This document shows, piece after piece, positions 31,427-52,284 of a stretch of DNA of 64,000 nt (within the stretch, counting starts at the first letter, position 1; every line of letters starts with the position of its first letter). The position numbers and the translations under genes were made by a program. This stretch comes from Thalia democratica. Taxonomy: Eukaryota. The notes beneath the pieces are model-generated. The model searched no databases, had not been told where the DNA came from, and saw only the letters and a list, made by a program, of their open reading frames with translations. The DNA lies in assembly GCA_965202585.1 (NCBI GenBank), contig OZ241831.1:5332001-5396000 (forward strand), in the 5' to 3' direction.

Positions 31427-34308
31427 GTAAATACGTAATAAAAAATTACTTTATTTTAACGGTTTCAAAATGGTTTCTTTCTTTTAAACTAATTAGAATT
31501 TTTTTTTTTTTTGAAGATTTTTTATAAATTTTAATAAGCTTATGTGATTTTACCTTAAAGTAATTTTACGTTTTTTTCTTAATTTCAGTTATACTATGAT
31601 AGATACACTATTTAGGGTGAATGAGAATTAAGATTTTGATTTTATTTTTTTATGGCTATCGTTTAAGTGAATGCTTAATGTTTAAAACAATTTTTTGGAA
31701 GATCTAAGCTAGGTACTCAAAAAAAAATTATGTTGATCACTTTTCATATTTATATATATGAATATAACTTTTTCTTTTCTAATTTTACTCTAGCTTCCAG
31801 CTTATATTTATTAAACATTTTCGTTTAAACTATACTCATTTTTTCAGTTGTTGGTGTTTTCAGTGAGTGCTGTTGCAGCTGGTTTCGACTGCCTACCCGG
31901 ATGCATTTGCGACATAAATGAGGACCATTTGCTGGCAAACTGCACGGATACGTCAGTTAGCCAGGTTCCCACGACAGACAATCAGTTCATTTACCAGGTA
32001 AAATGTTCAAAGTTTGTAAAAATGTACTGTTTGTATAAATTAGATATATAAAACTTCATGCTTATTACAGTATTATTGACAGATATAGATTAAACAAAAG
32101 CTTGTGCTTTATAATGCACATTGGTGAACTGCGCGGTATTTGACCTGCCAAACATAAATACTTTGTTTATTTTATAAAAGCGAGTTAAAATTAACTACTT
32201 TATGAATTGTTTTTAATTAAAACTTAGAAGTAAAATGATAATTTAATTGTGGGTAGGCAATGGTAATACTTTATATATTATTAAATTTAAAAACGAATTC
32301 TTTTTTAGCGTAAATTAATCAAAATAAGATGCAAAACATTTGTTGTTTAATCCTAAACGTTACTTATAAAAAGCTGTTGTACGGCACAAGTACTCATAAA
32401 ATGTTGTTCAAATGTTACTTCTAGCAAACAAAATGTTTAACACGTACCAAGTTTGTTACTTTTTTAATTTATTAGTTTTGGAAGCTACAATATTTTAATC
32501 ATAAGCATCTGACTACACTAATGGCCGAACATAAATTTATCAGTACCGATTACGGAAAGTGACTTAACTAACAAATTGAAAGCGTAAAAGGTATTATTAC
32601 CATTTAAAGTCCAAAACTATATTCTAAAAAAAATTTCTAGGTTAACGAACTTATACTGAGTTACAATGGTATAATAAGGATTCGATCAGACAATTTCAAA
32701 AACTACAACAGTTTAGAAAAATTAGTATTGAACGGTAACAAGTTGCAATTTTTCGAAAAAGACTCATTTCTTCCATTTAAAAAAAGGTAAATTATATTAA
32801 AAAGTTGTACACAATTTATTAATAAAAATAAAAAAATCAATACTCTAAGCTAATGAATTTTAATATCCTCTGTTTTAAAACTTTTATTTGGTTATGTTTG
32901 AAAATAAGATTCTTTATTTAAAAATCTAACTTTACATTTACCTCATCTTTTTTATAACTTTTTAGTGTAAAAGCTTTTGAAACCAAGTTTTTTTTTTAAT
33001 TTGCATGGTTATTTTGTATTTATAATTTTATTTTATTTTGGTTGTTTATATTCTTAAAGCTTAGCACCTTTTTTACTTAAAAACCTGTAAAAACTAACTT
33101 CTGTTCCAAGTTTATAAAAAACAATATATCAACTAAACATTTGCTATTTAAGATGATATATTTTCTAAAAATCTACATAAAGTTTGAAAATAGCTTTTTA
33201 ACTAGTGTGTCTAATAATAGCTTTATTTTAATTTTTGATATCAATTTATGAAAAAAAAAGAATTTAAAAATTAATTATTACTTCTATTTTTGTATTTAGT
33301 TTATTTTTTTAAAAATAGGTAAACCTATGATAACTTTAAAATGTATAAATGTTTTACTTAATTTTTACACTTTATAAAAAGTTATTCATCCTACTTTTAA
33401 ATCATGTCAAAAGTTTGAAAATATTTTTTGTCTGTTATTTATTTAGTTAAGTGCAAAATTCCAATTAAAAAACAAAATATTTAAATATCAGTGCAGGTTT
33501 AATATTAGAGTAATTAATTGATAAAGAAACTATAGAAAGACAAGCTGTAAAAAGTGAAAAAAATTATAAAACAAAACAAACAAAGCTTTTTTATTAAGAT
33601 TTTTCTTACCTTAAACTTAAAACTTAAGCATAGCTTTTTAGTTTAAGCGTTTAAATACATTAAACATTTTCCCATTTATAACTATTATTTTAGAAAGTTT
33701 TTACAAGTTTTTTTATGAAAATTGAAATATATTTCTGTTATGTTCAAAACAGATGAATAAAACGTAAACACACAAAGATTAATGTTTGTTATTTCAACGC
33801 CAATTCAAAGCGAGCCTAATCTTACAAAGTTAATGAAGTAAAACAAAACATTTTCGTTCAAAACCAGCTCGTTAACAAAAACGCTTCACCGTGGTAACAA
33901 AAAGGTTTTTTAACTAAAACATTCTAAACACTCACGCTCAAACAATTTTCCACCCGAACAAGTTTAATACCGAAACTTAACAATCCGCAATAAATTACCG
34001 CCGAAACCGAGCGAATAATTGTAATAAATGTTTTTTTTTAATTTCAGCGGCAAACTGACGTATTTAGACGCATCGAGCAATTTTCTGACGAACACCAGGG
34101 GATTGAACGAGTTGGCTGACGTTTGCGGTTCGATCACCCACCTACTGCTGGCCTACAACCGGGTCAACCTGATACCTGATTTTTTCAGGAGGATGGCCAG
34201 GTTGCGGGTTTTGGACCTGAGCCACAACGATGTTGTGACGCTGCCACCAAGTACCTGTTTGTTTGATAAGTAATTTAAATATTTTAAATTAACTTTCATA
34301 TTATTTGT

Positions 34309-34339
<31 letters not shown>

Positions 34340-37300
34340 TTATTTATACATTTATTATATTTTAAAGTTTTCTATGTTGTAGGAAACAAAGACTTTTAAT
34401 AAGCAACCGAATGCCATTTATAAATCCAAATAGTTATTATAGTTGTTTTTAGCTATCCTTTTAAATGTAAACTAACAACGGATGGCTGTAAGTCTTATAT
34501 TTTCAGCAGTCTGTTTCTTTCTTGTTTAATTAAACTGTTTTGAAGGTCGTTTGACTAATTTGTTTTGGACAAAATAAATTGTGGGCGTTAATCATAATTA
34601 CGAGTTATTTTAGGTGCAATCAAAAAATATTATTGAAGTTCTTAATAAAAATTAGCTATTTTTTGTTAAATAAATCTTCAAACTGTATGCCTTACTTCAA
34701 GTAACACTAAAGCTATAAGTTACTTTAACAAAGATTTAAAGAAATCTACCATTAAACAGCTTGTTGATTTTCAACTATTAAAGTTTAAGTTTTTTCTGTA
34801 CTAAGTAATTTAGTATAAAGTTAAGCAGTTTAATCAAAACACTTAACTTTTGTTTTTTCAAAACAAATAAAAGAAACAATGGTGAAAGTTATAATGTTAA
34901 TTAGCTTTCCACTACAATTTGTTGTATAAAACACTTTTCAATAACTTCGTACTTACTTTTAAGTATATTAAATGAAAAATAAACACAAATAAGTAATATT
35001 TACTAGTTATTGTTTTTGATAAGAATAAAATGTACTTGAAATGGAGATATATTCAAAAACTCTTAACTATATATTTTTTGATTTCAACCAATTTAAATTT
35101 TCTCTACTCTACGGGTGGGCAACTTTTTAGTCGGTCGGGCTATATTTAAAAAAAAAGTTTCTTTGTGGTTTGAACCTGTAAAAATAATTTATAGGCTGCG
35201 TATGTTTAAAAAATTTTCTATAAAACGCAAATTTTTTTTTTCTTAAATTGGAATAAGTTAATTATGTAACAACTAAAAAACACTCTAAAATACAAAAAAA
35301 AAGCTAAACGCATATTCTATAACATTTTTTTATTCAAAACACCAACACTAACTTGTTTCAACACGACCTTTTCAAGCTAGAAGTATGCTAGGGCAACTAT
35401 AACAAATTTCAACATTTTAAGTTTTTAGTCACGATATGTAACATATCTGTTATTTTCTTTTAGTATGCTTTTATAAAACTTTTACATTAGTTATGTCATA
35501 GCTAGATTTAAAGATCAAAGTTTGTATTGTGTAAAACATGAAACTTAGTTCGAAAAATAAGCATAAAAGGTTTGAAATCTGTAATTAAATTATAAAATTT
35601 GCTTCTCTTTAACGCATTACTTAAAACAACTAAAAAACATAAAATAAACGACATGTAAATTTTTCCGTTCAAAACTACTAATTGAATCAAATGTTAAAAC
35701 CGATTTTAAGGTTTTTTTTATTACTTTTATACCACTTTTAGTTGCCTACTTAAGCATCCTAAATTTAAATTGAAGAGATTTTGTTTATGTACGTAGAGAG
35801 GTAATAATCATAATCTTAATTGTATAGCTAAACTGTAAACAACTTTTGCTAGGAGTACGAAATTAGATTTTTAAATATGACGTACTTAATTTTTTGCAAC
35901 TTTCATTAACAACTTAGACAAATACGTATACAAACTTAACTATTTAAAAAATAAAAGGTTTATACGATCGTATTTTATATATATAAATTAAATAAATATT
36001 TAGCTCCAAATCAAGTTCTCGAGCGCTATCGACCAAAACTTTAAAAAAGCTATAAATATGTATGGGGTCTAAAAGACGCAAATAAAGACTATAATTTAAA
36101 GTGTGAAAAACTCTGCAGAACTAAAAGAAAACAAAAAAACATGCCATTTATGTTGCTTAGAAAAGTACGAAATCAAAAAATCGAAAAATATTTATCATTA
36201 AATAAAAGAAAAGAAAGGCAGCAACCCTGTCTCCACAATCAAAACATGTATTTTAAAAGAATAAAAACCACTAATCAATAAAAACAAATAGCAATAAAAT
36301 AAAACTAAAAACAAGAAAAAACAACGCAAAAAATAAGTTAACTTGTACATAAGTTATTTTCAAAATAAGATAATTAAAATTATTAAATTAATTTGAAACG
36401 TCATAATGTGTTTTTTGGGTCATTTTAAAAAATTTTGCTGTGTACTTTATTTTGTTCTGAAGATACGGTGTTTAAACGTTGAAACTAAAGAAACGATACG
36501 AAAATTAGTTGTTTATTTGTATTATAAAAATATATATATATATCTAAATAGAGCTTATAAAAAGAATTAAAGTTTAAGTTCGTGATACAACCCTTTTGAA
36601 TCCATTATCGTTTTACTTTTACACTGATAAGTAAATAAACTGTGCACTTTCAACAATTTTTTATTTAAATCCATACTTAAAAGTTTACAAGATACGATTT
36701 CTTTATCAAAATAATTTTATTAGTATTCAAATCTCCAAATTTCTTATTGAAAATCAAAGTTCTAAATGTTCCTAAAAGTATTTAAAATAGATTGAGATGT
36801 TTTTAATCAAGTTGCTTTATGTCATTAACTAAGAATCTTTTATTATTTACGGATCTGAATGCTGAAGTTACTTTGTTGTGTTTCATCATTAAGCTTTTTT
36901 TTATCACGATTAACATATTTGCTTGGTAGCATAAAAGAATAAATACTGCTCAATAATTAAGTAAGAAATATATATTTTTAATTCTAATTTTTATAGTTAG
37001 TTTAGATTCAAAAAATTAAAAGTATTTTTTAGTGTAAATATTAAAAAAAAGGTTTCGGAAACATATCTATTAAAAGCAATGAAAAATAAACCATAATTCC
37101 ATAAGATTGTACTATAGATATGTTTTATACTTACTTTCTGTTAAAAGATATTTGTATATTTTTGCTGTTAAATCTTATTAACGTTTTCGATTATGATTCT
37201 TTCTTAACTGAAAAAAAACTTTTAACCAAAGAAGTTAATAGTACAAGGTTGTTGATAAACTGTAAAAAAAAAATTCTGTTGTATTCAAAACCACTGGATT

Positions 37301-40300
37301 ATTAATAGCTTCAATAAAATTAGTTTTATACAAATAATGTTATATTCAGAATTTTACTTATAAGCTATTTCCAGCAACAAAAACACTTTTCACAGTTTTT
37401 CTTATTACAATTTCTTACTAGGTTATAAAAAACTTGACTATTTTTTATAAAAAACACATAGAAAACAGTGTTATTGGTATAATATTTCATAAAAGTTAAA
37501 GTTTTATAAAAAGAGTTATTTTTAAATGTTTTATTTTTAGCTCCAATAAATAAAGAGTCACATTTAACTCTTTATACCTACTTAGATTACATTTAAAAAA
37601 TTAGAAAGTTAAAATAATATCTAAGTACCAAGAAACAAAAATTTCAATTATGTCTTAGTAAAGCAAAAGTTATTTATAAAAAGTCAAAATGCGTGTGAAC
37701 ATATACTTTTTGTTTCTATTCAGCCATAATTTAGTTCTGTAATGGATAACAAAACCCGCAGAGTCGTCAACAAAGTCGGTAATTTCGACCAGTACATGAA
37801 AGCGGTATATGAAGACGAATACAACTTGCTCGTTTTGCACAAATACAACAGCAACTTTGGCTCCTCCTTTCCCGCCATTTTGTTGTTGGCGCGGCACTTT
37901 CCAGAAGTTTCGTTTTGCCTCGCGGACGCCAACAGCCCAGGGATGAAATTTTCGGGGTTCTCAGTCCAGCATGACGATTACAAAAAGCCACAGTTTGAGC
38001 TTTTTTTTCAGCACCAGTGCATAAGAACTGTTAACAAACCATCTGATAGAAAACTGCAGGACTTTGTAGATCTTCTCTCTACTGTTATAAGTCATGAAAG
38101 TCTCAGGTTCAAAAAGGAACCTTTGCATTATGTTCTAGGTGCAATAGACGTGAGCAATTACGCTGCTGACAAGAAAGAAGAAGAAAGAGAAAAGAAAGAG
38201 AAAGTTAAAAACTTTTATACTGGCGATGAATTTGAATTCGTAAAAAGCGACGAATTTCAAACTGACCAAGCCTTCATGATTTTCACATACGACTCGAGTT
38301 TTCTGCTCGACAGCAGCTACCCCAAAGTGGTGAGAAACTTAGCTAAGGCATACCCCGAATGTGTGTTCGTTTCCAATGATAAAGAAGATTATTTCAAAGA
38401 CAAGGCAAACCACAACAGGCTTCATATTAGAGTTATCGAAAAACATCAAGAATTGCATCATGAAAATTTTGTGAGCTTACACGGAATAGCCAGTTTGTTA
38501 AAATACGAACATTCTGGTATATTTGACAGTTGCAATTTCGTTTTTGCCTCTTGCGCCAAAGAGGCATTGCATCTGATTAAAGAGAAGCCCGCAGTCATGG
38601 CGTTTGTTTATGACAAGGATGATGAAAAAAGTATTTATTCCGAAAACGCATTTTTCAACATTGTCCACGACTTTTCCTTCTACTACCTTCACATCACAGT
38701 GCTGCTCCTTGAGAAGGCTGTTACAGACGTTGTTGAGTTTCCACTAAAATATCAGTACGCAGGTCGCTTGAAGGTGTTAGGCTTTCAGCAAGGCCAGCTT
38801 CGGCACACTTCGTACATCAAAAGTTTGGACCAAATAGTGAGGAGCATCTTTGATTTTGGAAGAGAAGGAATTTCAAATCCAAGGCAGCTGAAAACACCTT
38901 CTAATTTGCTGATGTTTCATTTTTAGGGATGCTTTAGGTAGCTCTATGCGATTAAGTTTATTCAATTTGTTATGAATACCATATGTTTTTGTGAAGTTTT
39001 ATATTTTTGTTCGTTCGTGTATGAAATAAATTTTCGTTGAATAAAAGATCATTTTTGTCAAATATTTAGTGCTTCCTTTAGTTATCTGATCAGTGTTGGT
39101 AGTTTAAAAAAGTAATATTTAGGAGAAGTAGTTCAATTAATACCTATTGTATTTCATGAAAAACGGTTATAATAGTTAAGATAAGTTAAAAGGTATAAGA
39201 AATATGGTATACTTTAACACATCTTTAACTTTGATTTTTTTCGGTTTATTGTCTTTATTTATTTTGAATGTTACTAAATTTATACAACAACTATTTTGCA
39301 TACCCCTATTAACGTTCTTAGTACAATAAAAAACATTTTATGTAGCAGTTTTTTATCGATTAGTTAATTCTTAATTATTTTATACTTATAGTCTTTAGTT
39401 TAACTGTTTATGGAAGAAGGTTATGATATCTAGTTTAAAATTATGCAATGTTCATTGACTTAGCTAGTGCGTGCTACATACTTTTTAAAAGTTTTTGTCA
39501 TAGCTATGCGATTAAGTTTATTTAGTTTGTTAAAAATACCATATGTTTTTGTGAAGTTTTATATTTTTGTTCGTTCGTGTATGGAATAAATTTTCGTTGA
39601 ATAAAAGATTATTTATTTCAAACACATTGTCAGTTATCAGATCAGTTTTGGTAGTCTTTAAAGTATTATTTAGGAGAAGTAGTACTATTAATGCCTATTG
39701 TATACCATGAAAGAATGTTAAAACAGCTGAGAAAAAGCTAAAAAGATATAAGAAATACGATATACTTCTACACATCTTTAACTTATATTTGTTTCGGTTT
39801 ATGGTCTATTTATTTTGAATGTTACTCGATTTTTGCAATAAAAAACAATTTATTTTTCAGTTTTTATCCATTAGTTAATTCTTAGATATTTTATACATAT
39901 GTTTATACTGATAGACTTTAGTTAAACTGTTTATGGAAGAAGCAATGGTTATGATATCTAGTTAAAATTGTGCAATGCTAATACGTGCTACATACTACTT
40001 AAAAGCTTTTGTCATAAATTTAACATAATTCAGGATCACTACCACCATCCTTACTGTTGGCAAATTTTTCATTCAACTCGATCAAATATTTTGAAAATTC
40101 AACATTTTCCAACAACTCGAACCTGCAACACCTCATACTCAGCGACAATCAAGCTTCCAGTGACGTCATATTCCACGTCTCGTCGTTTCTTCCGTTGAAA
40201 AATCTCGTTACGCTTGACTTGTCGAGGTAGTTTACTCAAAATTTAACAGGTTAAAATTAAGTTATAATAATAAGATTACAATCGACATGACATATGCCTA

Positions 40301-43300
40301 GAACGTTTAAAAAATCCTTCATGTCTAAAAAGGCTTAAGGTATCAAGTCTATTTTGTGAAATTAACATTTTTAAAAACACTTATAGCTCTTTATAAATTG
40401 ATATCGAACTAAATAACTGTGTATATCTTTTTGATGAGTATTTAACAAAAAAGCATGCTTTATTTTTTAATAAGTGAATAAAATACTAATAATTCTCTTC
40501 TGTGCTACTAATCGCATGAACTTACTCAGACTGTTACTAAGTAAAATTACTAATTTTGCTAAGTTTAAAATTGTTTTTAAGCATCAACACATACCTTAAA
40601 CATTTATCAAGTTTAAATTTCATGCTTGTTAAATAAGCCCTCTACTTCATACCATAGTTTAATTATCTTTATTGATCATTTTAAGAATACAAAACAACAT
40701 TTCAATGTGTCGTTGTACTTAAAACAGTTTTTGTTATGTTACAATTAATACTTTTGTTTTGAGATAATCGTCTATTTTAAGTTAAATAGTATGAATGTAT
40801 TAAAGTTTTGCGATTTTTTCGGTCGTTCTAACGTACTTATTCTTCAAAAACTATAAAAAATGAAACTTTTATTCAAGATATTTTAAAACTATGCACAAAT
40901 GTTTTAACAGTTGCAAGAATTAAAAAGGTTGAATAGATTATTGAAACATCTTCTGATTTCCTTTAATTTGTTTTTATCGTCAATGTTTTTTTGAGCTACC
41001 GTTCGTTTTTCTCAATTATAACATAAAAGATCAAAATACTGCTCTAAGGCTATGTTGTAGTTTTATAGGGCTAAATATTTTTATAGTTATGTTAAACACA
41101 TTGTATTTAGTAACTTAAGGTTATTAACAAACATATGAGAATAAAACAAATCTCGAGTTTAAAGTATTTCAAAAAACAAAAAAATATTATTCAAATTCTT
41201 GTTTTCGTTTATCACAAATATGTAACTTCAACAAATTATTATTTTTCAGATGCTTTTGTCGTAGAATATCAACAAGCAGCTTTCATACGATGTCCAAGCT
41301 GAAAACACTGAAGCTTCAAAGAAGCTACCTAAGAAAGCTACCAAACTTCAAAACCATCAACTTGACTAAAACCCCCTATACTGAAAAATCTTCTAAGTGG
41401 TTCAACCCAGAACTGGAGGTATTGGACGTTTCGCACAACCTCCACCTGGAAGTATTATCCAGCGGAGGATCGGACACTTTGTTTCCCCCTAACCTGAAAA
41501 AACTAGATTTCACCGGCGACTCAGTGCCGATGGTGAACGGGTTTATGTTTTCCAACTTGCGAAGTTTGCAGTCGCTGAAGCTGGACTTTACGAGGGTCAA
41601 CCACATCAGCAGAGATTCGTTTGCACGGAACAGTGACCTTGAAGAAGTCTCCATAACGCTGAACACTCTGAAGGAGATTCCGCAGCTACCAGCCAGTGTT
41701 AAAAGGCTCAATTTGATGGGCAACCGAATTGAAAATGTGACGAGTTTAACCGGAAACGGCTTGAAAGTTAGTTCAGAGGAAGGAAATGTTACTGTGGGTC
41801 TGAATAAAAGTATTAGAAATTTGTCGAACTTGGAAGTGATAAACTTGAGCAAAGGCAGAATATCGTTCATTGAGAGCGGAGTTTTCAAGAACATGAACAA
41901 GCTTACAAGTTTGAACATGTCAGATAACCACTTACGAGTCATTTCTGACGATGTGCTAGAAATAAGGTCAGTTGAAATACTTTTTTGGAATTAAACGTTA
42001 ATTTGTAAATCACTCTAAATGTTTGACCTTAAAATTTCAAGTTTAGTATGTTGTTTTAAATTTCTATTGGAATGATTTACTTAAATTTGAAGTGAAACAT
42101 AATTTAAAACATCACTATTTCCGACTATTTACTATGTTACATTGACGTAAGTTTGTTTAAAGTACAAGATACATCTGCTCGTATTAAAATTTTGTTTTGA
42201 TTATTTTGTTTCTATATTTTACATAAACAAAGGTTTAAATTTCTGTATTTTTATTTTGATTTAGATACTAATTTAAACTTTAAAACTTATTAAAGTTCAA
42301 TACATGTTTTAAAACCTAAATTTACAACGCAAAATTTATACAGAGTTGTTATAAAAAGTAACCTTTATTGAAGTGTTAAAGTTAAAACAATTATAACTAC
42401 TCTTTATATAGTTTGTTTAAACCTTAAAAAAACGTAAATATTAATTATCATGCTTTATAAAGGATTTCGTGGTTAATACCTGTTAAATTTATTAAATGAA
42501 ATAAAAATGTTTTCTATCATATTTCTTAAAAAAAAACAGTTCAAATTCAACACTAACAACTTTGGACTTATCATCAAATGAAATAGAAAAAGTTGGAAAC
42601 TCCCCTTTTCGTTACCACAACAACCTAGTTGAGCTCTACTTGCAAAATAACTACATTGCATCGGTGAACGAAAACATTTTCACTAATCTTCTGAATGTCG
42701 AACACGTTGACTTGTCAATGAACAACATTGTTGACATTTCTCCAGGTGCCTTACTGCCTTTGAAGAACATTAAAGTCAGTTTTAACTTCAAAATAAAATA
42801 TTTTACTTAAAAAATTACAAAATTTTTATATTACGTTCGATACTTAAACTTATTTATATTTAATTATTACAGCTGAATTTTCAAGACAAAGACAATTTTC
42901 TGGCCCGCACCGTGTTTTTTTAGTTTAAAAGCAATTTATACAAAACAAGCAAACTTAATTTTTGTTTTTTATAATGTTTACAAATATGCTCCTTACTAAA
43001 TAGGGAGTAAACGGCAGTGGTAATTTAATAATGTTTTCATCACAGTTTTGATATTAAAGATTTTACTGAGTTATGCTGCCCGCAAGAAAATTTTACTAAC
43101 AAATTAGCCAAAAACTATTTGTAATAAATACATGGTTTTCAAGGCTGCTGAGCCCGTTGAATTAGCGATACATTACTTGAATAAGCTTTTTAGAACTTCT
43201 CAAATCCAAAATCAAGTAATATTATTGCATAAAAGTAAACATAACTAAGTTGTATCATTACGTATAACATTGTTGGATTGCAATGCTGCTCATTATTTTA

Positions 43301-46300
43301 ATAACTTTTAGTTTTAAATCTGATAAAGTTTACTTACACTCGGTTTCCTTCTATGGAGCCTAATAAAAATTTAAGGTTTTGTTTTCGAACTAATTTTCTT
43401 TAATCTCAAACATTACTAAAACAAGTGTTAAAAATTTACAAGCTTTTTTTTATTGGCTTAATAAACTTTTATATGTTTGTTACTAATCGTGCAATAATTA
43501 ATTTTGAAGTTTATAAGTTCGAAACAGCTAAAATAATAAAAAATAACTTCGTTTTCAATAGATAATATCAAACATATCGTTTTATTCAGGTACTCCTGCT
43601 AAACAACAACCACCTCGAAATAATATGGAAGGATCAGTTCTCAAACCTGAAGAACCTACACACATTGACTTTGCACAACAACAGAATAATAAGAGTGGAT
43701 CACCCTCAGAGCATACCAGCACAAGTAACTCACCTGTCTTTTGAATGGAACCAGTTGAGCACATTTCCTATTTTGCAGTCTGATAGACTCGAACACCTTG
43801 TTCTGTCATACAACAACCTGACTGTTAGTTTGTTTTTAATAAACTAAGTGACGTAAAAATATTTTTATTGAACATTTAAAATTAATTACTAAAACGCAAC
43901 GTTATTAAGTTTAAATAGTTTTTAGTTTGTTAAATACTTTTATTAAGTGTGTTAGATTCCTATGTAATATTTTACTTATTTTTTAAAGTTTTTCTTTTTA
44001 TTACTTTGTCTAAAACTTAAAATATAATTGTTTTAGTTTAGTGCAAGTCTATGATGAGGTTTAAACGAAATTTAATTTATAGTTATCATTATAGGTGTTT
44101 TTATTGACCAATATGGCTGGTTATCATCATTTAGGATATAAAAGTTAACTTTATTGCTAAACTTACTTAAAAAACAACAAAAAATCTATATAAAACTTTT
44201 TGTTTTGGATAATAACTTATTTTTAGCGCAAAAAAAGCTAAAATATAATTTTAAAACTGGTTGGTTTATAAACTTTTGAGTCTTTTTGTTATTTTAAAAT
44301 GACAAGTATCAAAATTTTTAAACAAAAAGCTATTTTAAATTTAACTTTAAAATAAATTTAGAACTATCAAAACACTAAAAGATCAATTAGAAAATAGGTT
44401 TTGAAGCACTAGTTTTAAAAAAACCAATTAAAAAGGAAATATGTAAGAAACTTTGTTTGTTATACATTAAATTTAAAAATTTAACTTTTTTTATCTTGGA
44501 ACTTTGTTTTTCACATAGTGTAAATAACAATTAAAGAAAAATATAACAAAACTTCTTTGAAATTAAATTTGAAGAAAAAGTTGACAAAATCAAGAATTTC
44601 AAAATTTGTAACTGTCAAACACAAACATTCTTAAAAACCAAAACTATAAGTAGTCTTTAAAACTTGTATCCTTTTTAGTCGAATGCTAAATGTTAAACTA
44701 GAACTTTTTATAAATTTAGCCCGAAAAGTCTATAACTTTTATAAGCAACAGAAAAAGTAAAAAGTTTTTTTTTGATGTGTAACTATGTGTACAGTATTAA
44801 TACTTTACTTTGAGCAAATCTTTGTGCATAAAATTATAAGCTTGAAACACATGTAAAGTAAATTCTGTTTGACACAATGTATACAAACCAGTAATTAAAA
44901 AAAAATATTTGAAACTATCTCTATACATAATACTGTTCACAGGTATACACTTTAACAACACTGGCCTATTGACAAATTAGTTATATGTATACTGTTTAAA
45001 TATTTTGAAAAATCAATTTTTAAACTAATGACAAAATTGTTATGCTTATGTCGTCTACGCAAAATTCTAAACAAAATTACAAGTATTTTCCTAAAATAAA
45101 AAGATAATAAAAATAACTACGTTGAAGACTAAACATTATAAAATTTCAGGTGATACCGGAAACAGCTTTTAAAAAAACACAAAATTTAAAGCACATCGAC
45201 TTGTATAAAAACCCGAACCTAATAATAGACGACTACAGTCAATTCAAATATGTAAAAAATTTAGAACATTTAGACATTGCAATGAGTGGTCTAGTAACGA
45301 AGTTTATTGATGTTTCGATGCCGAAGTTGAAAGAATTAGTAATGTATGAAAGTCAAGTAAGAATTGTTTAGTCTTTTTTTGATATAAGACAACAAAAAAA
45401 AAGAATTTAAATTCAAAGTAACGTAACACTTTATCAAGATTCTAGAAAGGTTTCTTGTTTACAAAGAAATACATGATTTTTTAATAACCTTGACTTCTAA
45501 AACTTGGTTTGTTACCAAGTTTATATAAAAATAAAATAGCATTTCTACTTTTCAAACTGTTTATACTTAATAATTATACTATTAAGTGCACTAAATCATT
45601 TATTATAGCAATGTTTTAACTTAAATATTTTAACATTTACAGTTTTTAACATTTAAAGTTTTTCACACAGATCACCACTAAACTCTTATCAAACTCGGAC
45701 ATCCGACACTTCCTCCCCAACCTCCAGGACCTCAATCTGGCCTATAACAACATTTCGGTGATTCCCCAACAATTTCTCACCCGTCTTCCCCCCACGCTGA
45801 AATCAATCGACCTGAAAGGCAACGAGTTCGATTGCGACTGCCAACTTTTACCCTTCGTTGATTGGATACTCGACAGTGACGTCATAAACGTGGTGGGGTG
45901 GCGCTACTACATGTGCCAGGGGCCGCCCGTCAACTTCACCGACTCGGTCGTGGACGTCGTTTCTCAATTAAAGTGTGACGTCACAACGACGATACCGGTG
46001 TCGACGCCGGCCAATAGGAAGCAGGGAAAGTCGTCGCTGATCGTCGTATTCGCGGTTTTGATCTTCGTGGTGCTCGTTTCAGTCGTCGTCTTCCGCAGGT
46101 CGAGGCGGATGCGGAGGATGACCACGACCAGCATGGGCCCCATGATCGCTTCGAACGCGTCCGGTACGAGCAACAGGAGAAACTGCTGTTTAGCTTTCAA
46201 TTGGACGAGGACGAGAGAGGAGCAAGGGAGTTACGAGGAGGCGCAGTGCGAGGAACAGCTGATGGACCGGAACGAAGAAGAAGAACCTTCCAGTGTGATG

Positions 46301-46306
46301 TCATAA
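31379..46306 (+). CDS. Type I membrane leucine-rich-repeat protein, TLR-like ectodomain without TIR domain (about 922 aa, 10 exons)
   Basis: Exons 31379-31426, 31848-31997, 32641-32786, 34048-34250, 40034-40226, 41250-41966, 42540-42774, 43590-43823, 45150-45356 and 45671-46306 are GT/AG and phase-compatible (2769 nt including stop). Signal peptide, LRRNT (CLPGCICD...ANC), about 27-29 LRR units, LRRCT (NEFDCDCQL...CQGP), TM helix, about 70-aa tail. The exon 4 donor (GTACCT) is weak. Confidence 0.88.
31848..31997 (+). CDS. LRR receptor exon 2 (signal peptide end and LRRNT)
   Basis: LLVFSVSAVAAGFDCLPGCICDINEDHLLANCTDTSVSQVP; TTTTCAG acceptor, GTAAAA donor. Confidence 0.9.
32641..32786 (+). CDS. 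LRR receptor exon 3
   Basis: VNELILSYNGIIRIRSDNFKNYNSLEKLVLNGNKLQFFEKDSF; not in the ORF track, read directly. Confidence 0.88.
34048..34250 (+). CDS. LRR receptor exon 4
   Basis: LTYLDASSN, ITHLLLAYN and LRVLDLSHN repeats; 3' boundary inferred from phase. Confidence 0.85.
34309..34336. repeat. (TA)14 microsatellite
   Basis: Direct reading, just inside LRR intron 4. Confidence 0.95.
37742..38926 (+). CDS. Intronless triple thioredoxin-fold-like protein, paralog 2 (394 aa), nested in LRR intron 4
   Basis: Uninterrupted ORF between LRR exons 4 and 5 on the same strand; acceptor AG at 37722-37723; AATAAA at 39025 and 39040. Confidence 0.85.
   Translation: MDNKTRRVVNKVGNFDQYMKAVYEDEYNLLVLHKYNSNFGSSFPAILLLARHFPEVSFCLADANSPGMKFSGFSVQHDDYKKPQFELFFQHQCIRTVNKPSDRKLQDFVDLLSTVISHESLRFKKEPLHYVLGAIDVSNYAADKKEEEREKKEKVKNFYTGDEFEFVKSDEFQTDQAFMIFTYDSSFLLDSSYPKVVRNLAKAYPECVFVSNDKEDYFKDKANHNRLHIRVIEKHQELHHENFVSLHGIASLLKYEHSGIFDSCNFVFASCAKEALHLIKEKPAVMAFVYDKDDEKSIYSENAFFNIVHDFSFYYLHITVLLLEKAVTDVVEFPLKYQYAGRLKVLGFQQGQLRHTSYIKSLDQIVRSIFDFGREGISNPRQLKTPSNLLMFHF
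38940..40020. repeat. About 560/520-bp tandem duplication of the paralog-2 3' flank
   Basis: 38941 and 39501 both begin ..CTATGCGATTAAGTTTATT...TTCGTTCGTGTATG..AATAAATTTTCGTTGAATAAAAGAT and stay colinear; only one copy is present at 50415-51000. Confidence 0.9.
40034..40226 (+). CDS. LRR receptor exon 5
   Basis: SLPPSLLLANFSFNSIKYFENSTFSNNSNLQHLILSDN...LKNLVTLDLS; AG/GT ends; phase 1 to 2. Confidence 0.88.
41250..41966 (+). CDS. LRR receptor exon 6
   Basis: ORF 41290-41994 with about 9 LRR units; TTTTTCAG acceptor, GTCAGT donor. Confidence 0.92.
42540..42774 (+). CDS. LRR receptor exon 7
   Basis: LTTLDLSSN, LVELYLQNN, VEHVDLSMN; ACAG acceptor, GTCAGT donor. Confidence 0.92.
43590..43823 (+). 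CDS. LRR receptor exon 8
   Basis: VLLLNNN, LHTLTLHNN, VTHLSFEWN, LEHLVLSYN; TTCAG acceptor, GTTAGT donor. Confidence 0.92.
45150..45356 (+). CDS. LRR receptor exon 9
   Basis: LKHIDLYKN, LEHLDIAMS, LKELVMYES; TTTCAG acceptor, GTAAGA donor. Confidence 0.9.
45671..46306 (+). CDS. LRR receptor exon 10 (last LRRs, LRRCT, TM, cytoplasmic tail)
   Basis: LQDLNLAYN, LKSIDLKGNEFDCDCQLLPFVDW...CQGPP, TM SLIVVFAVLIFVVLVSVVVF then RRSRR, acidic tail, TAA. Confidence 0.92.
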   Translation: MTTKLLSNSDIRHFLPNLQDLNLAYNNISVIPQQFLTRLPPTLKSIDLKGNEFDCDCQLLPFVDWILDSDVINVVGWRYYMCQGPPVNFTDSVVDVVSQLKCDVTTTIPVSTPANRKQGKSSLIVVFAVLIFVVLVSVVVFRRSRRMRRMTTTSMGPMIASNASGTSNRRNCCLAFNWTRTREEQGSYEEAQCEEQLMDRNEEEEPSSVMS

Positions 46307-48067
46307 TTCTTCCGTGGCAACGAATTGATAAATTGAATTGGTAACAATTGAGTAAAGTGGTTTAAAAAATAACCTTAAAGGTTTAGTGTTGTGTTAAAGA
46401 CTAGTTTTAAAGTCATTTCAATTTTAAAGCTTAATTAATTTTTTTTTTTTTTTTCCTTTAACTAAATGATTAAAGTTATACTTTAATTGACTTTTTCTAA
46501 TTTTGCACGCATACACATAGACACAACTGTAAGATAAGTTTTAAATAATTAAATTAAAAGATGAATTATAAACATTTTTTACTTTTAAAAGTTTGTATTT
46601 TAGATAGTTGTTGTTACGATGTATTTTTCAAAATGATATGTTTTTATTTTCGTTTAATTCTAACCAACTGCTTTAAGCATACTTTTTAGAAAATTAACTG
46701 CAATTCAATCTGATACAACTGAGTATTGCTGCTGTATTGCAGTTATTTTTTAATTTGCTTTACTTACTGACCTCTTTTTAAAGTTGGTGTAAAGTATATT
46801 TAATCGTAATGTAAGCTTTAGGCAGCTTAATGATTATTTATTAACGAGATTTAAATTTTTCTTAAATTAATTTTTTGATTTATAAATTACTTGTTTTTAA
46901 AAACAAAAATAAGACAAGTTTAATATCGTGTATTATTATAGCATTTAAAAACATACAATATAATTGTTTTTATATTTAAATCGTGTTTTTAAAAATTTTT
47001 AGAAGCTTAAAAATTTCATTTATTTTATATGCAAAGTTGTGTACAACAAAACATTTTAGTTTTTCTTTGTTTTTGTTTTTCTTTTTTTCTTTGAAATAAA
47101 TGATTTTATATTGTCAACTATTTCATAGTTTGTACATAGCAAAAATAGTACAATATAAGATATAGACTGACAAATAAATAGTAATTATAAAAAGTAGATA
47201 TATACACAAAATATAGCTTGTCATTTTATCTTGCATTATTTTTTAGGTTTCGTTTAATAGTTAGATTTAAGCAAAAATTGAAGCTTATTTTAGATTAAGT
47301 TCATATATATTTGGTCTTGTTTAACGCAATTAAAACTTAGAAAGCATTAGTTTTTAAAAAAAATCTAAAAAAGACTCTACAATCAGCTGCTGTAAGGTCA
47401 ATAGAATTTTAAAAGATTAATTAACGAAGGCCTAATAAAAGTCTAATTGAAACAAAGTTTTACTAAAAGACAAAACAAAACCTTTTTTTTGTAGAATTTT
47501 GTTTTACATTTCAATTCTTTATTTTAATTCTTGGTGAAAAACAAAATGTTTTTAGGAAATCTAAATCCACTGAGAAACTAAGTTTTTTTGTTAAAAATTT
47601 TAAAATAAGAAGTGCTACTTTTAATATTTTTTTTTCAATTATGTCACAAAATAGGAAAGCCTGAAGTTGTTGTTGTTTTTATTAAGGTACTTGTTTGAAT
47701 AAGAAACTGTTGTTTAGAGAAGACCGTCTGAGTTTGAATTTATTTAAACAATTTTGTATTAATAAACGTAAACAAATATAAAGCTGTTACGTTGTAGGTC
47801 AGCTAATTTTTAGTCGGTAGACAAAGATTACCAAAAAATCTTATTTTGGTCTGACTTATCATAAAAAAAGCTAGCATCGTAATTTCGAAAAACAATAAAA
47901 ACACTAAACTAAAATAAAAACCGGACACTTTGGAAGGAAATATCAAAATTAACTAACTACAAATTAGTCACAAGCTGATTGATTTTAATTATAAAATGTT
48001 ATGCCGCATTAACTATCAAATTAAAAGAAAGAAAAAAATAACGCAAGCAATAGTAGCAACCAACAAT

Positions 48068-48165
48068 TAGTGATCTACCGAATTCGAAAATTTTGGATTA
48101 GGCCAGATCCGAATCCGAATTTTATTTTCAAATAAGAATTCGGCCCAATCCGGATCTGAATCTCA
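48068..48165. mobile_element. Possible hAT-like terminal fragment with CCGAAT/ATTCGG motifs
   Basis: TAGTGATCTACCGAATTCG...GATCCGAATCCGAAT...GAATTCGGCCCAATCCGGATCTGAATC resembles motif-rich hAT subtermini; no partner end found. Confidence 0.35.
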
Positions 48166-49236
48166 GTTTTGAAACGATTGCTTTACTTATATACTGACAG
48201 TAAATATACAGTTCACTTTTAACAAATTAATTATTCAAATCTACACTTTACAGTTTTCAAGATGTGAATTCTTTATCTAAAATATTTTATTAGTGTTCAA
48301 ACTTCCAAACTTTTGTGAAAAATCAAAATTATAAATGTTCTTAGAAATATTTAAAATATCTTATAAGAGTTTCAGTCTAATTCTTTTTAGTCGGACTGAA
48401 ATTCTTTTATTTGTTTACTGTTCTGAATACTGAAGTTATTTTGTTGTAAAATCATCATTTAACTTTTTTAAGAAGGATTAACATATTTCCTGGGTAATAT
48501 AAAATATTAAATACTGCTCAATAGTCAACTAAAACTTATAGATTTTTAAATTTAATTTTTATAGCTGATTTCGATTGAAAAATTAAAAGTAAGTTTTAGT
48601 TTAAACTAAGAAAAGGTTTTAGAACAATTTTTATAAAAGAAATGATAATTTAAGCATAACAACATTAGATTGTTTGAGCTTACTATCTGTAAAAAGGTTT
48701 TTTTTCAATTAAGTCTCATTAACGTTTTGATCATGTTTCTTTCTTAACTTATGAAACTTTTTACAAATATACATTTATAATACAAGTTTATTTGGATAAA
48801 CTATAGAAACAATTTCTGTTTCTGTCATACTTATAACCGCTACAACAAAGTTAGTTTTTATACAAATGAAATTTATATTTAAAGTTTTACTTATAACATA
48901 ATTCAAGCAACAAAAATATTTCAAAAGTAATTTCAAATTTTTCTTATTACAATTTATCACTATTTTATAAAATAGATAACTATTTATATATAATGTACAA
49001 AGAAAACAGTGTTATTGGTATAAAAGTTAATATTTAGCTCCCATAAATAAAAATAAGTTAATTTTTCATACCTAATACGATTGTATTTACTCAATAATCA
49101 AATAAATGTAATATCTCAGCTACCATGAAATTAAAATTTCAGTTAGGACTTAGTAAAGCAAAAGTTATTTATAAAAAGTTAAAATGCGTGTGAACATAAA
49201 CTTTTTGTTTCTATTCAGCGCTAAGTTAGTTCTGTA

Positions 49237-50415
49237 ATGGATAACAAAACCCGCAGAGTCGTCAACAAAGTCGGTAATTTCGACCAGTACATGAAAGCGG
49301 TGTATGAAGACGAATACAACTTGCTCGTTTTGCACAAATACAACAGCAACTTCGGCTCATCCTTTCCCGCCATTTTGTCGTTGGCGCGGCACTTTCCAGA
49401 AGTTTCGTTTTGCCTCGCGGACGCCAACAGCCCAGGGATGAAATTTCCGGGATTCTCAATCCAGTGTGATGACTTCAAAAAGCCACAGTTTGAGCTTTTT
49501 TTTCAGCACCAGAGCATAAGAACTGTTAACAAGCCATCTGATAGAAAACTGCAGGATTTTGTAGATCTTCTCTCTACTGTTATAAGTCATGAAAGTCGCA
49601 GATTCAAAAAGGAACCTTTGCAGTATGCTCTAGGTGCAATAGACGTGAGCAATTACGCTGCTGACAAGGAAGAAGAAGAGAGAGAAAAGAAAGAGAAAGT
49701 TAAAAACTTTTATACTTGCGAAGAATTTGAAAACAGCGAAGAAATAGGTCCTGACGACCTCTTCTTAACTTTCACATACGACTCGAGTTTTCTGCTCGAC
49801 AGCAGCTACCCCAAAGTGTTGAGAAACTTGGCCAGGGCATACCCCGGGTGCGCGTTCGTTTCCATGGATGAGGAGGATTATTTCGATGATGTTGGAAGCC
49901 GCAATAGGCTGCATATTGTTGCCATGGAAAGCGGTGAAGAATTGCATCATGAATATTATGAAAGTTTACACGGAATAGCCAGTTTCTTAAAATACGAACA
50001 TTCTGGTATATTTGACAGTTGCAATTTCGTTTTTGCCTCTTGCGCCAGAGAGGCGTTGCGTCTGATTGAAGAGAAACCCGCAGTCATGGCGTTTGTTTAT
50101 GACAAGGATGATGAGGAAAATATTTATTACGAAAACGCATTTTTCAACATTGTCCACGACTTTTCGTTCTACTACCTTCACATCACAGTTCTGCTCCTTG
50201 AGAAGGCTGTCACAAACGTTGTTGAGTTTCCACTGGAGTATCAGTACTCAGGTCGCTTGAAGGTGTTAGGCTTTCAGCAAGGCCAGCTTAAGCACACTGC
50301 GTACATCAAAAGTTTGGATCAAATAGTGAGGGGCATGCTTGATTTCGGAAGTGAAGAAATTCCGACTCCCAAGCTGCCGAAAGCACCTTCTAATTTGCTG
50401 ATGTTTCATTATTAG
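49237..50415 (+). CDS. Intronless triple thioredoxin-fold-like protein, paralog 3 (392 aa)
   Basis: Uninterrupted ORF; same upstream acceptor (49217-49218) and homologous flanks as paralog 2. Confidence 0.85.
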   Translation: MDNKTRRVVNKVGNFDQYMKAVYEDEYNLLVLHKYNSNFGSSFPAILSLARHFPEVSFCLADANSPGMKFPGFSIQCDDFKKPQFELFFQHQSIRTVNKPSDRKLQDFVDLLSTVISHESRRFKKEPLQYALGAIDVSNYAADKEEEEREKKEKVKNFYTCEEFENSEEIGPDDLFLTFTYDSSFLLDSSYPKVLRNLARAYPGCAFVSMDEEDYFDDVGSRNRLHIVAMESGEELHHEYYESLHGIASFLKYEHSGIFDSCNFVFASCAREALRLIEEKPAVMAFVYDKDDEENIYYENAFFNIVHDFSFYYLHITVLLLEKAVTNVVEFPLEYQYSGRLKVLGFQQGQLKHTAYIKSLDQIVRGMLDFGSEEIPTPKLPKAPSNLLMFHY

Positions 50416-51026
50416 TGTTGCTTTAAGTTGCTCTTTACGATTAAGTTCATTTAGTTTAATGTGTTTTAAATATCCTAGGTTTTTATGAAGTTTTATGTTT
50501 TTGTACATTTGTGTATGAATTAAATTTTCGTTGAATTAAAATACATTTTTATCTAATACACAGTGCTTCGTCTAGTTATCTAGATCATTGTTGGTCGTCT
50601 AAAAAAGTATTATTTAGCAGTGGTACAATTAGTACTTATTGTATTCCATGAAAGACCGTCAAAACAGTAAAGAAAAAGTTAAATAATAAATACTGTATAC
50701 TTCAACACATCTTAAACTACAATTTGTTTCGGTTGTACAGTTTATTGTCTTTATTTATTTTGAACTTTACTCAACTTTATAAAATAACTACTTTGCCCAC
50801 CCTTACTATACTAACATACTCAATACTATAATAAAAACATTTTTATTTTTTTGTTTGTATCGATAAGGTTTTTGTTAAATATTTTATGTTTTGAGATTTT
50901 AGTCTAACTGTTTATGGACGAAGCAATGGTTACGAACTGAAGTTAATATTGTGCAAGGTTCATTGACTTTAGTAGTACGTGTTACAAATTACTTGAAGCT
51001 TTCGTCATAAGCAAATTAAATTTCAG

Positions 51027-51216
51027 TATTTCTAACACCATCTTTACTGCTGGAAAATTTATTCAACTCTATCAAATATTTTGAAAATTCTACATTTTCC
51101 AACAACTCGAACCTGCAACACCTCATACTCAGCGACAATCGAGCTTCCAGTGACGTCATATTCCACGTTTTGTCATTTCTCCCGCTGAAAAACCTCGTTA
51201 CGCTTGACTTGTCGAA
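51027..51216 (+). pseudogene. Orphan duplicate of LRR receptor exon 5
   Basis: Aligns to 40034-40226 with one in-frame 3-nt deletion; AG and GT are retained; no other LRR exons nearby. Confidence 0.8.
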
Positions 51217-52284
51217 GTAGGTCAATGTTTTTGATAGATTGTAAAATGATAACATGTAACTAAACTAAAATTGATATTAGCCAAAAATCAAATTGAGATC
51301 TCTGATCATGTTTTTTCGATCAGTTAGTGTGTATTTTTATGATGAATACGTTGATTCTAAAAACTTGCTCAAATTTTAATTAAATTAAATAAACATAAAA
51401 AAGTGGTTATAGTTTTGTTTAGTATTTTGTATCAATAAATATTGTAAGAATGCAACAAAGTTTTAAAATAGTTTATAATCACTTTTAGGTGACATTTTTA
51501 TTTATTGTTTAAAAGCCTTGACAAGCTTTAGATGAAATCTCAAGTCTCCTTACTTTTTTTTGAATAACTTAAGTAGAACAAAACTGTTTTAAGTGTTAAG
51601 TTAGTTGCTAAACGTTATATTATAACTTAAAATCGCTTTCTTTAAGTTAAAGATACTAAAACATTTTTAGATGCATTTTTTTATTTTCAACTTAACATTA
51701 CACAACATATTTAAACTTAATAATATTTCTCTTCAGTAAGTGTTACAAAGTTAGCTGTCCTGGACAAGACGTTAAAATGTATCAGTGGTGTGCAACTTGA
51801 CAACCGAAAGGTTCTTTTTGCACCAGGTCTTAAGATCAAATGTATTGAGCGTTTTTATTTGTCTTTCAATAAAGTATAATTATAATAAGGTTGTTTTAGG
51901 TACACATTTTCCGTTGATTAAAAACTTTTTAATCAATAATTTTCAGTTAAAAATGAAAACTTGTTTTTTCGAAATTTTGTTTAAAAACTAGGTTAATTGA
52001 ATTTTTTATTTTCTTATTATATTTTTAAATAATTTTCACTGGTGAAATGGCAAAAAAATAAATTAGCTATCAAGGGTAAGTTAGTCATTAAGAATAATTT
52101 CGCTATTTAAAGAAAGATAGTATGTAATCAAAAGTAAAAAAGCTATTGAGGGTTACGTGACGATTCAAACTCAGATAAATCAAATTCTTTGAAAAAAAGT
52201 TAAAGACATTATATCTTACTAAATAGTGTATTCTTTTTAAAATGATTAAATAACTATTTAGGTCTTATTAATGGGTAGCTGTCT

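Follow-up and report, generated by a model that had tools for sequence, protein, structure and literature searches.

Over a tenth of mammalian genes harbour a nested gene, and expression is uncorrelated in most host/nested pairs (10.1101/2023.05.02.539096). The locus described here lies in a window of 64,000 nucleotides, by which we mean the whole stretch of Thalia democratica DNA that was analysed and whose positions are used throughout. It resembles the host/nested pairs and segmental tandem clusters of animals in having a full open reading frame (ORF) within an intron and block copies that drag host flank along, while it is less usual for host and nested gene to share a strand and for one host to have three intact paralogs about it. 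The host gene encodes an LRR receptor, and the nested gene encodes a thioredoxin (Trx)-like protein.

On the receptor side, the closest described proteins are the TIR-less CD180/RP105 and the extracellular LRR superfamily (LRRC4, GPIb, LRRTM, LGI1), with which the host protein shares the ectodomain, one TM segment and a short, TIR-less tail. LRR-TM proteins with short tails are common, and such a tail alone gives no reason to postulate an absent adaptor.

On the Trx side, tandem Trx folds are found in the PDI family (PDIA5, ERp27, ERp44, PDILT) and in calsequestrin, with three of them, as here, in calsequestrin and ERp44; the PDI b/b' domains, ERp27 and calsequestrin also lack a redox motif, as the Trx-like copies do. 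In contrast to the PDI family, the Trx-like copies show no Pfam or HMM relation to it, and the signal peptide, ER retention and catalytic CGHC that together mark its members are all missing from them; the low global TM-scores of our model further indicate a different domain arrangement. Calsequestrin (PF01216), which carries an SR signal peptide and is very acidic, shares the three-Trx build, but the Trx-like copies have neither its Pfam domain nor a signal peptide and, at pI 5.1-6.5, are only mildly acidic. The phosducin-like proteins (PhLP2/PDCL3 and TXNDC9, redox-inactive co-chaperones of CCT) are likewise cytosolic Trx folds without CXXC, but differ in that the Trx-like copies have three domains and no N-terminal helical extension before the first fold.

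Partnerships between thioredoxins and immune receptors are also on record, although none of CITRX/Cf-9, thioredoxin-h/SRK and TRX1/NLRP1 is known to be encoded by nested or linked genes. In these cases the thioredoxin is single-domain with an intact redox site, whereas the proteins of this locus have three domains and no CXXC. CITRX binds Cf-9 according to work cited in PMC3346213, and NLRP1 binds specifically the oxidised form of TRX1, via a transient disulfide (10.1101/2023.09.27.559829).

The host receptor gene

The receptor gene lies on the plus strand and consists of the following parts.

31830-32000, plus strand: receptor exon (approximate), with a hydrophobic signal-peptide core and the LRRNT cysteine cluster CLPGCIC...C
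32641-32787, plus strand: receptor exon 3 (approximate), an open frame matching LRR_8 at E 2.2e-8
34046-34250, plus strand: receptor exon 4, LRR by Pfam; 3' end RNA-supported with donor GT, 5' end inferred from AG
34251-40033, plus strand: receptor intron 4, 5783 bp, host of Trx-like copy B
40034-40224, plus strand: receptor exon 5, LRR, 191 nt, from a spliced contig
41248-41970, plus strand: receptor exon 6, a large LRR exon, from a contig piece; LRR_8 at E 3e-20
42520-45371, plus strand: receptor exons 7-9, LRR, delimited only by their open frames (42505-42810, 43566-43847, 45126-45371)
45690-46306, plus strand: last receptor exon (5' boundary approximate), with the last LRR, LRRCT (CDC...C...C), TM from 46031 and the stop codon

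The product is a single-pass LRRNT-LRR-LRRCT-TM protein of about 10 exons and about 20 LRRs, with a signal peptide and a 70-aa cytoplasmic tail (46094-46303, directly before the stop) that is probably disordered. The open frame over the signal-peptide exon (31815-32048) has no ATG, so the initiator Met must come from a further exon, upstream of those listed; the intron hosting copy B is intron 4 when this Met-bearing first exon is counted. A spliced contig of 1921 nt from an RNA-like run (X5) joins the last 30 nt of exon 4 (34221-34250) to 40034, and the same contig joins 40224 to 41248 over a GT..AG intron. The earlier note on this DNA had placed a Trx-like gene in intron 4 on the strand of its host, and this contig bears that out.

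The same note was also right to describe the host as an LRR transmembrane receptor without TIR, since the 70-aa tail runs straight into the stop codon and genome-wide scans for TIR (PF01582, PF13676) gave matches only on contigs C1, C2 and C6, with none on the receptor's own contig, C7. Set beside a Toll-like receptor, the protein has the LRRNT-LRR-LRRCT ectodomain and the single TM and lacks the cytoplasmic TIR. The LRRCT exon matches LGI1, TLR13, TLR9, CD180, LRRC4 and GPIb, with E between 1e-8 and 1e-4; such matches are generic across the extracellular LRR superfamily and do not demonstrate that the ectodomain is close to TLRs in particular.

Three intact Trx-like genes around one receptor

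Three Trx-like ORFs surround or lie within the receptor gene.

20426-21601, minus strand: Trx-like copy A, intact ORF, 391 aa
37742-38926, plus strand: Trx-like copy B, nested in receptor intron 4, 394 aa
49237-50415, plus strand: Trx-like copy C, downstream of the receptor, 392 aa

All of them are intact and intronless, with no internal stop in 391-394 aa, and their proteins are 79-83% identical (83% for C and B); at the nucleotide level their coding sequences share about 85-89%, few enough identities for the copies to be distinguished. The stop codon of copy B is 1.1 kb from receptor exon 5; the ATG of copy C lies 2.9 kb past the receptor stop codon, with a copy of exon 5 (51026-51216) 0.6 kb past C; and the ATG of copy A lies 3.3 kb downstream of the last receptor exon as copied on the minus strand. 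In every case, the ORF and the adjoining receptor exons point the same way. These measured distances agree with the spacing of 1-3.3 kb and the shared orientation reported previously. The receptor exons next to A and C, however, do not form a receptor gene but are copied pieces, exons 8-10 with two frameshifts in the last of them in the one case and a lone copy of exon 5 in the other.

The three copies are under purifying selection. dN/dS between them is 0.42-0.49 overall (0.49 for C and B) and 0.2-0.6 when the three Trx domains are taken singly, so that positive selection among the paralogs was not seen in any of these domains, all of which have dN/dS < 1.

The only sign of expression from any of the Trx-like copies consists of two 151-nt contigs of low depth in run X5, which span 38856-39166 and cover the 3' end of B and 240 nt behind it. 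We rejected copy B as a fusion partner or alternative terminal exon of the receptor, because the spliced contig skips the ORF and only 4 in-frame codons precede its ATG. The nest might instead matter through transcription alone, with the two proteins not interacting: transcription of copy B would affect splicing, polyadenylation or isoforms of the host, or the host would repress B. The position of B on the host strand inside a 5.8-kb intron, the X5 host contig spliced over that intron and the two short contigs exactly at the 3' end of B are all in keeping with such interplay, as is the higher isoform diversity of mammalian hosts of nested genes (10.1101/2023.05.02.539096). The X5 contigs cannot, however, show starts, ends or isoforms, and copies A and C, outside the gene, are equally conserved, so the survival of B does not depend on the nest. 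We consider this explanation unlikely.

Predicted fold and family of the Trx-like proteins

The structure of copy B was modelled from 14 sequences (pLDDT 72, pTM 0.72), an earlier model from 5 sequences (pLDDT 42) having been discarded. Three thioredoxin folds are predicted, at about residues 7-125, 156-262 and 263-372. In VIA-align, Trx-fold matches to residues 7-125 reached Z 10-11.5 with an rmsd of 2.6-3.0 over 100-114 residues, and those to residues 265-360 reached Z 10.2-10.6. A Foldseek search of AFDB returned multi-Trx PDI-like matches over residues 9-375, with E down to 8e-13, and phosducin and PhLP chains were also among the structural matches of the model; the global TM-scores of the structural matches were low, at 0.17-0.33. 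By its predicted fold, the family belongs to the thioredoxin-fold superfamily.

In sequence searches, the Trx-like ORFs matched no Pfam family at E<=0.1, thioredoxin (PF00085) included, and the family profile found thioredoxins among PDB sequences only at E 0.09-0.95, which is not significant. The best local sequence likeness of domain 1 was to the PhLP2 chains 3evi and 2dbc, aligned with strand2-helix2-strand3 in register, at a nonsignificant E of 0.47-0.79. None of the three copies has a CXXC anywhere; where the CXXC site would be, the loop of domain 1 has the sequence NSNFGSSFP and that of domain 3 DKDDE(K/E), and out-paralogs have SCCP or LCCP in domain 1. The most conserved motif of the family, FVYDKDDEE, occupies the position expected for the active-site loop of the third fold. 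The label "redox-dead thioredoxin" given to these proteins previously thus stands as regards the modelled Trx fold and the absent CXXC, but only at the level of fold, as no Pfam family was matched.

By inspection, the N-terminus (MDNKTRRVVNKVGNF) is hydrophilic, the C-terminus ends in ...LLMFHF, and no signal peptide or ER-retention motif is present. Lacking a signal peptide, the proteins are presumably cytosolic. Judged from the fold, they may be non-catalytic modules with a binding or chaperone-like role, comparable to PDI b/b' domains, calsequestrin or the phosducin-like proteins.

A profile search of 1.84 billion proteins yielded 10 matches at E<=0.001, of which the 6 that were read are members of the family or fragments of them and the other 4 are short. 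The ENA/Logan contigs with homologs were all from Tara Oceans and 0.9-3.5 kb long, which leaves no room for neighbour genes, and a scan of JGI metagenomes found no relatives. By these searches the family appears to be lineage-restricted and almost an orphan, with relatives in only a few marine metagenome contigs. It is this putatively non-catalytic, lineage-restricted family, with its three predicted Trx folds in tandem and neither redox motif nor signal peptide, that makes the locus of interest.

Duplication history of the locus

Three features record how the receptor and the Trx-like genes came to be interleaved.

36594-40230, plus strand: duplication block around copy B, shared with the C block at 48167-51220
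51026-51216, plus strand: orphan copy of receptor exon 5 behind copy C, an open frame with 90% protein identity and a 3-nt deletion
24398-26886, minus strand: inverted copy of part of the receptor, covering exons 8-10 and 0.5 kb past its 3' end

The homology of the C block to the B block ends at 51220, only 6 nt past the exon-5 copy. Homology between B and A reaches further upstream, where 34552-39168 matches 24280-20221, and the A region is collinear with that of C over 43721-46791 and 48179-50619. The last exon of the inverted receptor fragment carries two frameshifts. In the receptor paralog L011 on contig C1, the coding sequence of exon 5 is contiguous with the equivalent of exon 6; exon 5 is thus an original part of the receptor, and it is the sequence at 51026-51216 that is the copy. 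Copy B in intron 4 is the source of copy C.

A first duplication carried part of intron 4, the Trx-like gene and exon 5 to a point about 0.5 kb behind the receptor 3' end, giving copy C and its orphan exon, and a second, inverted duplication took exons 8-10, the intergenic DNA and that Trx-like copy to the position of A. The blocks were later blurred by deletions, a tandem repeat and gene conversion. Within intron 4, the 3' flank of copy B is tandemly duplicated (38944-39502 and 39504-40016), and the 95% identity between 24957-25406 and 45731-46188 is probably the result of gene conversion. This order of events predicts that A groups with C, whereas the informative coding sites put B with C (27 sites, against 12 and 12 for the other groupings), and gene conversion after the duplications must therefore be invoked for the Trx-like copies as well. 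A relative of 68% identity on a 1.7-kb contig is 76.5-76.8% identical at the nucleotide level to all three copies, and its equal distance gives no pointer to the ancestral position.

The earlier note had allowed that the linkage might be just a by-product of duplicating a segment that contained a retrogene. Segment duplication is indeed the better explanation, but its retrogene element, a processed copy of an intron-bearing parent that was inserted in the intron and later copied, is extremely unlikely. The coding region is intronless in all copies, as a retrogene would be; no intron-bearing parent, however, was found among the best candidates in the genome, the distant paralog L004 is itself a single open frame, and the relatives on contigs of other plankton metagenomes each consist of one ORF as well. 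Furthermore, the copies remain homologous for 1.1-3.2 kb ahead of the ATG and past the 3' end, and homology reaching 3.2 kb upstream indicates duplication at the DNA level. We also rejected a mobile-element origin of the Trx unit, as a search scoring the best candidates found just five Trx-like loci in the 802-Mb genome.

What these duplications made of the receptor is a lone orphan exon and a 3' fragment with frameshifts, and no complete second receptor arose from them. The claim that receptor and Trx-like gene were repeatedly co-duplicated therefore does not survive: two contiguous segmental duplications took place, and the receptor was never duplicated whole. Because all three cases of proximity derive from these two block duplications, they are not independent events, and paralogs adjoining pieces of one gene count as one linkage event, not three. 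The process at work is ordinary local segmental duplication that drags neighbouring exons along. Since selection seems to have kept the Trx-like copies and not the receptor pieces, their proximity is best read as physical hitch-hiking. Our preferred reading, to which we give a probability of about 0.72, is that two independent kinds of gene have been interleaved by local DNA rearrangement and that their closeness is not a sign of a receptor-adaptor system.

Besides the grouping of B with C, two observations count against this preferred reading. Conservation is higher in the exon-5 copy behind C than in the sequence on either side of it. Moreover, the nested copy occupies the oldest of the three positions, and the nest may therefore be ancient and conserved.

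Is there a receptor-adaptor pair?

Outside the window, the out-paralog L004 (C1:46.96 Mb) is an intact single open frame of 387 aa with no LRR exons within +/-20 kb, and L005 on contig C6 is a fragment of a Trx-like gene with no LRR exons in the flanks that were checked (about 11 kb upstream and 1.5 kb downstream). The receptor paralog L011 lies at C1:71.67 Mb, 25 Mb from L004. The older paralogs of the two genes are thus not linked to each other, and within this genome the linkage does not recur across independent paralog pairs.

These data bear on the proposal that the tail of the TIR-less receptor recruits a cytosolic Trx-fold scaffold and that nesting and linkage were selected for co-regulation. 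Such a pair, if true, would be unusual among animal receptors, the adaptor being encoded within the gene of its own receptor. The proposal draws on a receptor tail of just 70 aa without a known signalling domain, on Trx-like proteins that have no signal peptide and evolve under purifying selection, on the host-strand orientation of the nested copy and on the binding of immune receptors by Trx-fold proteins elsewhere (CITRX/Cf-9, TRX1/NLRP1). Against it, no whole receptor was co-duplicated and receptor pieces decay while Trx-like copies persist, the out-paralogs are unlinked, and nesting is in general no predictor of co-expression. The cited precedents do establish that Trx-fold proteins can bind immune receptors, but their thioredoxins are single-domain and redox-intact, and NLRP1 is bound via a disulfide, which makes them weak analogies for proteins that have no CXXC and no detectable sequence relation to them. 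With receptor pieces broken or orphaned where Trx-like genes are intact, and with the older paralogs unlinked, the notion of a co-regulated receptor-adaptor pair finds no backing here, and we regard it as very improbable.

A prediction of the complex between copy B (394 aa) and the 70-aa receptor tail gave a score of 0.00, with a pLDDT of only 23-24 for the partner, and carries no weight either way on binding. A related reading, in which the three-Trx proteins would be lineage-specific cytosolic adaptors or chaperones for the receptor tail, the nest would be ancestral and selected, and the copies would diversify the adaptor, with domain 2 changing fastest, would amount to a new receptor-signalling module that evolved in an animal of the marine plankton; we hold it to be a very long shot. 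Only in the C-terminal tail of the Trx-like proteins (22 residues) does dN/dS rise above 1, for some of the pairs and from a very small number of sites.

The receptor gene and the nested Trx-like gene

The window is very AT-rich (GC 23-35% over most of its length) and carries a multi-exon LRR receptor gene on the + strand, from ~31.8 to 46.3 kb, together with three intronless Trx-like ORFs (A, B, and C) that share 79-83% protein identity, none of the three having an internal stop.

Receptor exons and Trx-like loci, in window positions unless a contig of the same genome is named
20426-21601 (-): Trx-like ORF A, single-exon, 391 aa
31815-32048 (+): open receptor frame with hydrophobic signal-peptide core and LRRNT cysteine cluster
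32641-32787 (+): receptor LRR exon
34028-34270 (+): receptor LRR exon, given as open frame
37742-38926 (+): Trx-like ORF B, single-exon, 394 aa
40034-40224 (+): receptor LRR exon
41248-41970 (+): receptor LRR exon
around 42.5, 43.6, and 45.1 kb (+): frames of further receptor LRR exons
stop at 46306 (+): last receptor exon, with LRRCT, TM helix, and 70-aa tail
C1:46961749-46962912: Trx-like out-paralog L004, 387 aa, intact, intronless, about 39-41% identity
C6: Trx-like fragment, 70 residues, two stops

A spliced contig of 1921 nt from the RNA-like sequencing run X5 joins 40224 to 41248 over a GT..AG intron, and its 30 nt before 40034 are identical to window positions 34221-34250, after which the genome has GT. 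These joins set the end of receptor exon 4 at 34250 and exon 5 at 40034-40224, and the reading frame is unbroken over both junctions. ORF B is thereby placed on the same strand inside the 5783-bp intron between exons 4 and 5, as the earlier note had proposed, and the distances of 1-3.3 kb that it gave between Trx-like copies and receptor exons were confirmed. Two low-depth X5 contigs of 151 nt each, at 38856-39166, take in the end of ORF B plus the 240 nt that follow, with no contigs elsewhere in intron 4; they hint at a B transcript, and pre-mRNA is also possible. Nested genes lie within more than a tenth of mammalian genes, and expression is uncorrelated in most of these pairs (10.1101/2023.05.02.539096). 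A purely transcriptional interplay of the host with its nested gene seems unlikely to us.

The receptor is a single-pass extracellular LRR protein. Its description as TIR-less holds, as the last exon stops after the 70-aa tail and a whole-genome scan with the TIR and TIR_2 profiles gave matches on C1, C2, and C6 alone and none on C7, the receptor's chromosome. In 802 Mb, TIR-like open frames numbered only about six (C1, C2, and C6), a lower bound, which suggests that the TIR repertoire of this genome is small. The LRRCT exon gives similarly weak E-values against LGI1, TLR13, TLR9, CD180, LRRC4, GPIb, and others, a likeness generic to the extracellular LRR superfamily. Short-tailed LRR-TM proteins are a common type, so the missing signaling domain alone demands no adaptor.

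An orphan family with three predicted, redox-dead thioredoxin folds

Pfam searches of the Trx-like ORFs returned no family at E<=0.1, and the evidence does not support placing them in any named Trx family. Two relatives turned up in a word-indexed search covering 5.8 billion proteins and ten in an exhaustive HMMER profile search across 1.84 billion cluster representatives, all six sequences read among these ten being family members or fragments thereof; the four relatives' contigs that were looked up came from marine metagenomes (three labeled Tara Oceans). With these few database relatives and only five loci in the whole genome (802 Mb), three of them in the window, the family is small and lineage-restricted, and the low locus number rules out a mobile element.

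Fold comparison gives much stronger evidence than sequence searching. A structure model built from a 14-sequence alignment (mean pLDDT 72, pTM 0.72) was compared with 48,161 PDB representatives; residues 7-125 matched thioredoxin and thioredoxin-like domains at Z 10-11.5 and rmsd 2.6-3.0, in alignments of 100-114 residues spanning nearly whole chains, and residues 265-360 reached Z 10.2-10.6. All matches among AlphaFold DB clusters were multi-thioredoxin, PDI-like proteins (lowest E 8e-13, over residues 9-375), an ESM Atlas shape search agreed, and a poor first model had already drawn PDI, thioredoxins, and phosducin-like proteins. The family profile gave only non-significant E-values (0.09-0.95) against thioredoxins and phosducin-like protein 2 (PhLP2), although the PhLP2 alignment falls in the expected strand2-helix2-strand3 register.

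CXXC is absent from all three window copies. The description as three redox-dead Trx folds is thus supported at the level of fold. The pseudo-active-site loop of domain 1 reads NSNFGSSFP in the window copies, and the most conserved family motif, FVYDKDDEE, fills the corresponding position in domain 3. Where the window copies have SSFP, L004 and the out-paralog proteins P0002 and P0003 have two adjacent cysteines and then P (SCCP or LCCP); a thiol lost from the window copies may survive in the older branch. By inspection, the Trx-like proteins contain neither a signal peptide nor an ER-retention motif, and they are probably cytosolic. To us, this orphan three-Trx family is a more interesting object than the proposed receptor-adaptor system.

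Two local duplications as the probable source of the linkage

Self-alignment of the window resolved two blocks. The first relates B to C (36594-39502 versus 48167-51009, 80% identical; 39504-40230 versus 50433-51220, 74%) and spans the Trx gene with 1.1 kb upstream and its downstream flank, as well as receptor exon 5, whose copy lies at 51026-51216, with homology ending 6 nt past the exon end. In the second, A, read on the minus strand, is collinear with C over exons 8-10 plus 0.5 kb downstream (26886-24398 versus 43721-46791) and over the Trx unit (22723-20257 versus 48179-50619), and with B over sequence from intron 4 together with the Trx unit (24280-20221 versus 34552-39168). Because exon-5 and exon-6 equivalents are contiguous in one open frame in L011, the receptor paralog at 71.67 Mb on C1, exon 5 is ancestral to the receptor and the copy behind C derived; this indicates that the block was copied from the intron (B) to a site behind the gene (C).

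Three steps make up the simplest history. First, part of intron 4, Trx, and exon 5 would have been copied, as a block of at least 5.7 kb, to a site ~0.5 kb past the receptor. Next, exons 8-10 and the new Trx copy would have been duplicated in inverted orientation, over at least 6.9 kb. C would later have lost its upstream intron-derived part.

Two local features accompany these blocks. The orphan exon-5 copy (+ strand) is uninterrupted in frame, retains its AG/GT borders, and is 90% identical in protein, with flanks about 73% identical. B's 3' flank is itself tandemly duplicated within intron 4, immediately before exon 5 (38944-39502 and 39504-40016, ~0.56 kb, 75% identical).

The case for a receptor-adaptor pair

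Neither of the two duplication events copied the whole receptor. Beside A, the last exon is frameshifted twice compared with its functional counterpart and exons 1-7 have no copies, and beside C there is one orphan exon only; neither set of pieces is a functional receptor. For the three intact Trx copies, overall dN/dS is 0.42-0.49, and the three Trx domains taken singly give 0.2-0.6; we infer that the Trx genes were kept by selection and their linkage partners were not. No LRR exon lies within +/-20 kb of L004, the receptor paralog lies 25 Mb from it, and the flanks checked beside the C6 fragment contain no LRR exons. Because the receptor copies are incomplete and the older paralogs unlinked, the "repeated co-duplication" that had motivated a functional system comes down to a single independent observation, the nest itself, and the system is left unsupported. 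Contigs of Trx-like relatives in other species are all under 3.5 kb; a very close relative, with intron, ORF, and exons at 90-99% identity, is seen in short contigs only, which fit the same arrangement but say little.

The precedents cited for such a pair are genuine, but they are single-domain thioredoxins with an intact redox site, unlike the Trx-like copies. NLRP1 binds oxidized TRX1 via a transient disulfide (10.1101/2023.09.27.559829). This type of binding is impossible for a protein without CXXC. A true receptor-adaptor pair is, in our judgment, highly improbable. Our results instead favor independent genes linked by two local duplications, to which we assign a probability of roughly 0.7. 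The earlier note had offered, as its fallback, a by-product of duplicating a segment that contained a retrogene; the segment duplication is the best explanation, while the retrogene element is dropped, a retrogene origin of this intronless gene being scarcely credible to us.

Signs of gene conversion and other features

By informative coding sites, B pairs with C (27 versus 12 and 12), and all pairs of Trx-like copies show unusually little synonymous divergence in domain 1; we take both as signs of gene conversion. The inverted last-exon copy (24957-25406) is 95% identical to the functional exon (45731-46188) over the LRRCT, TM helix, and start of the tail, against 80-86% in neighboring exon copies and about 80% elsewhere, which suggests recent gene conversion between the pseudo-exon and the live receptor gene. 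Gene conversion would also reconcile the B-with-C site counts with the block structure.

Elsewhere in the window, a GC-rich island at 4000-8000 (40-47% GC versus about 25% around it) has long ORFs on both strands that lack Pfam matches, among them a 315-aa Q/S/P-rich ORF with a hydrophobic N terminus (4657-5604, - strand). At 58946-63900 (- strand), ORFs on the same strand show weak matches to RVT_1 (E 0.009) and GIY-YIG nuclease (E 0.003), a combination typical of Penelope-like retroelements, and this element is probably a decayed copy.
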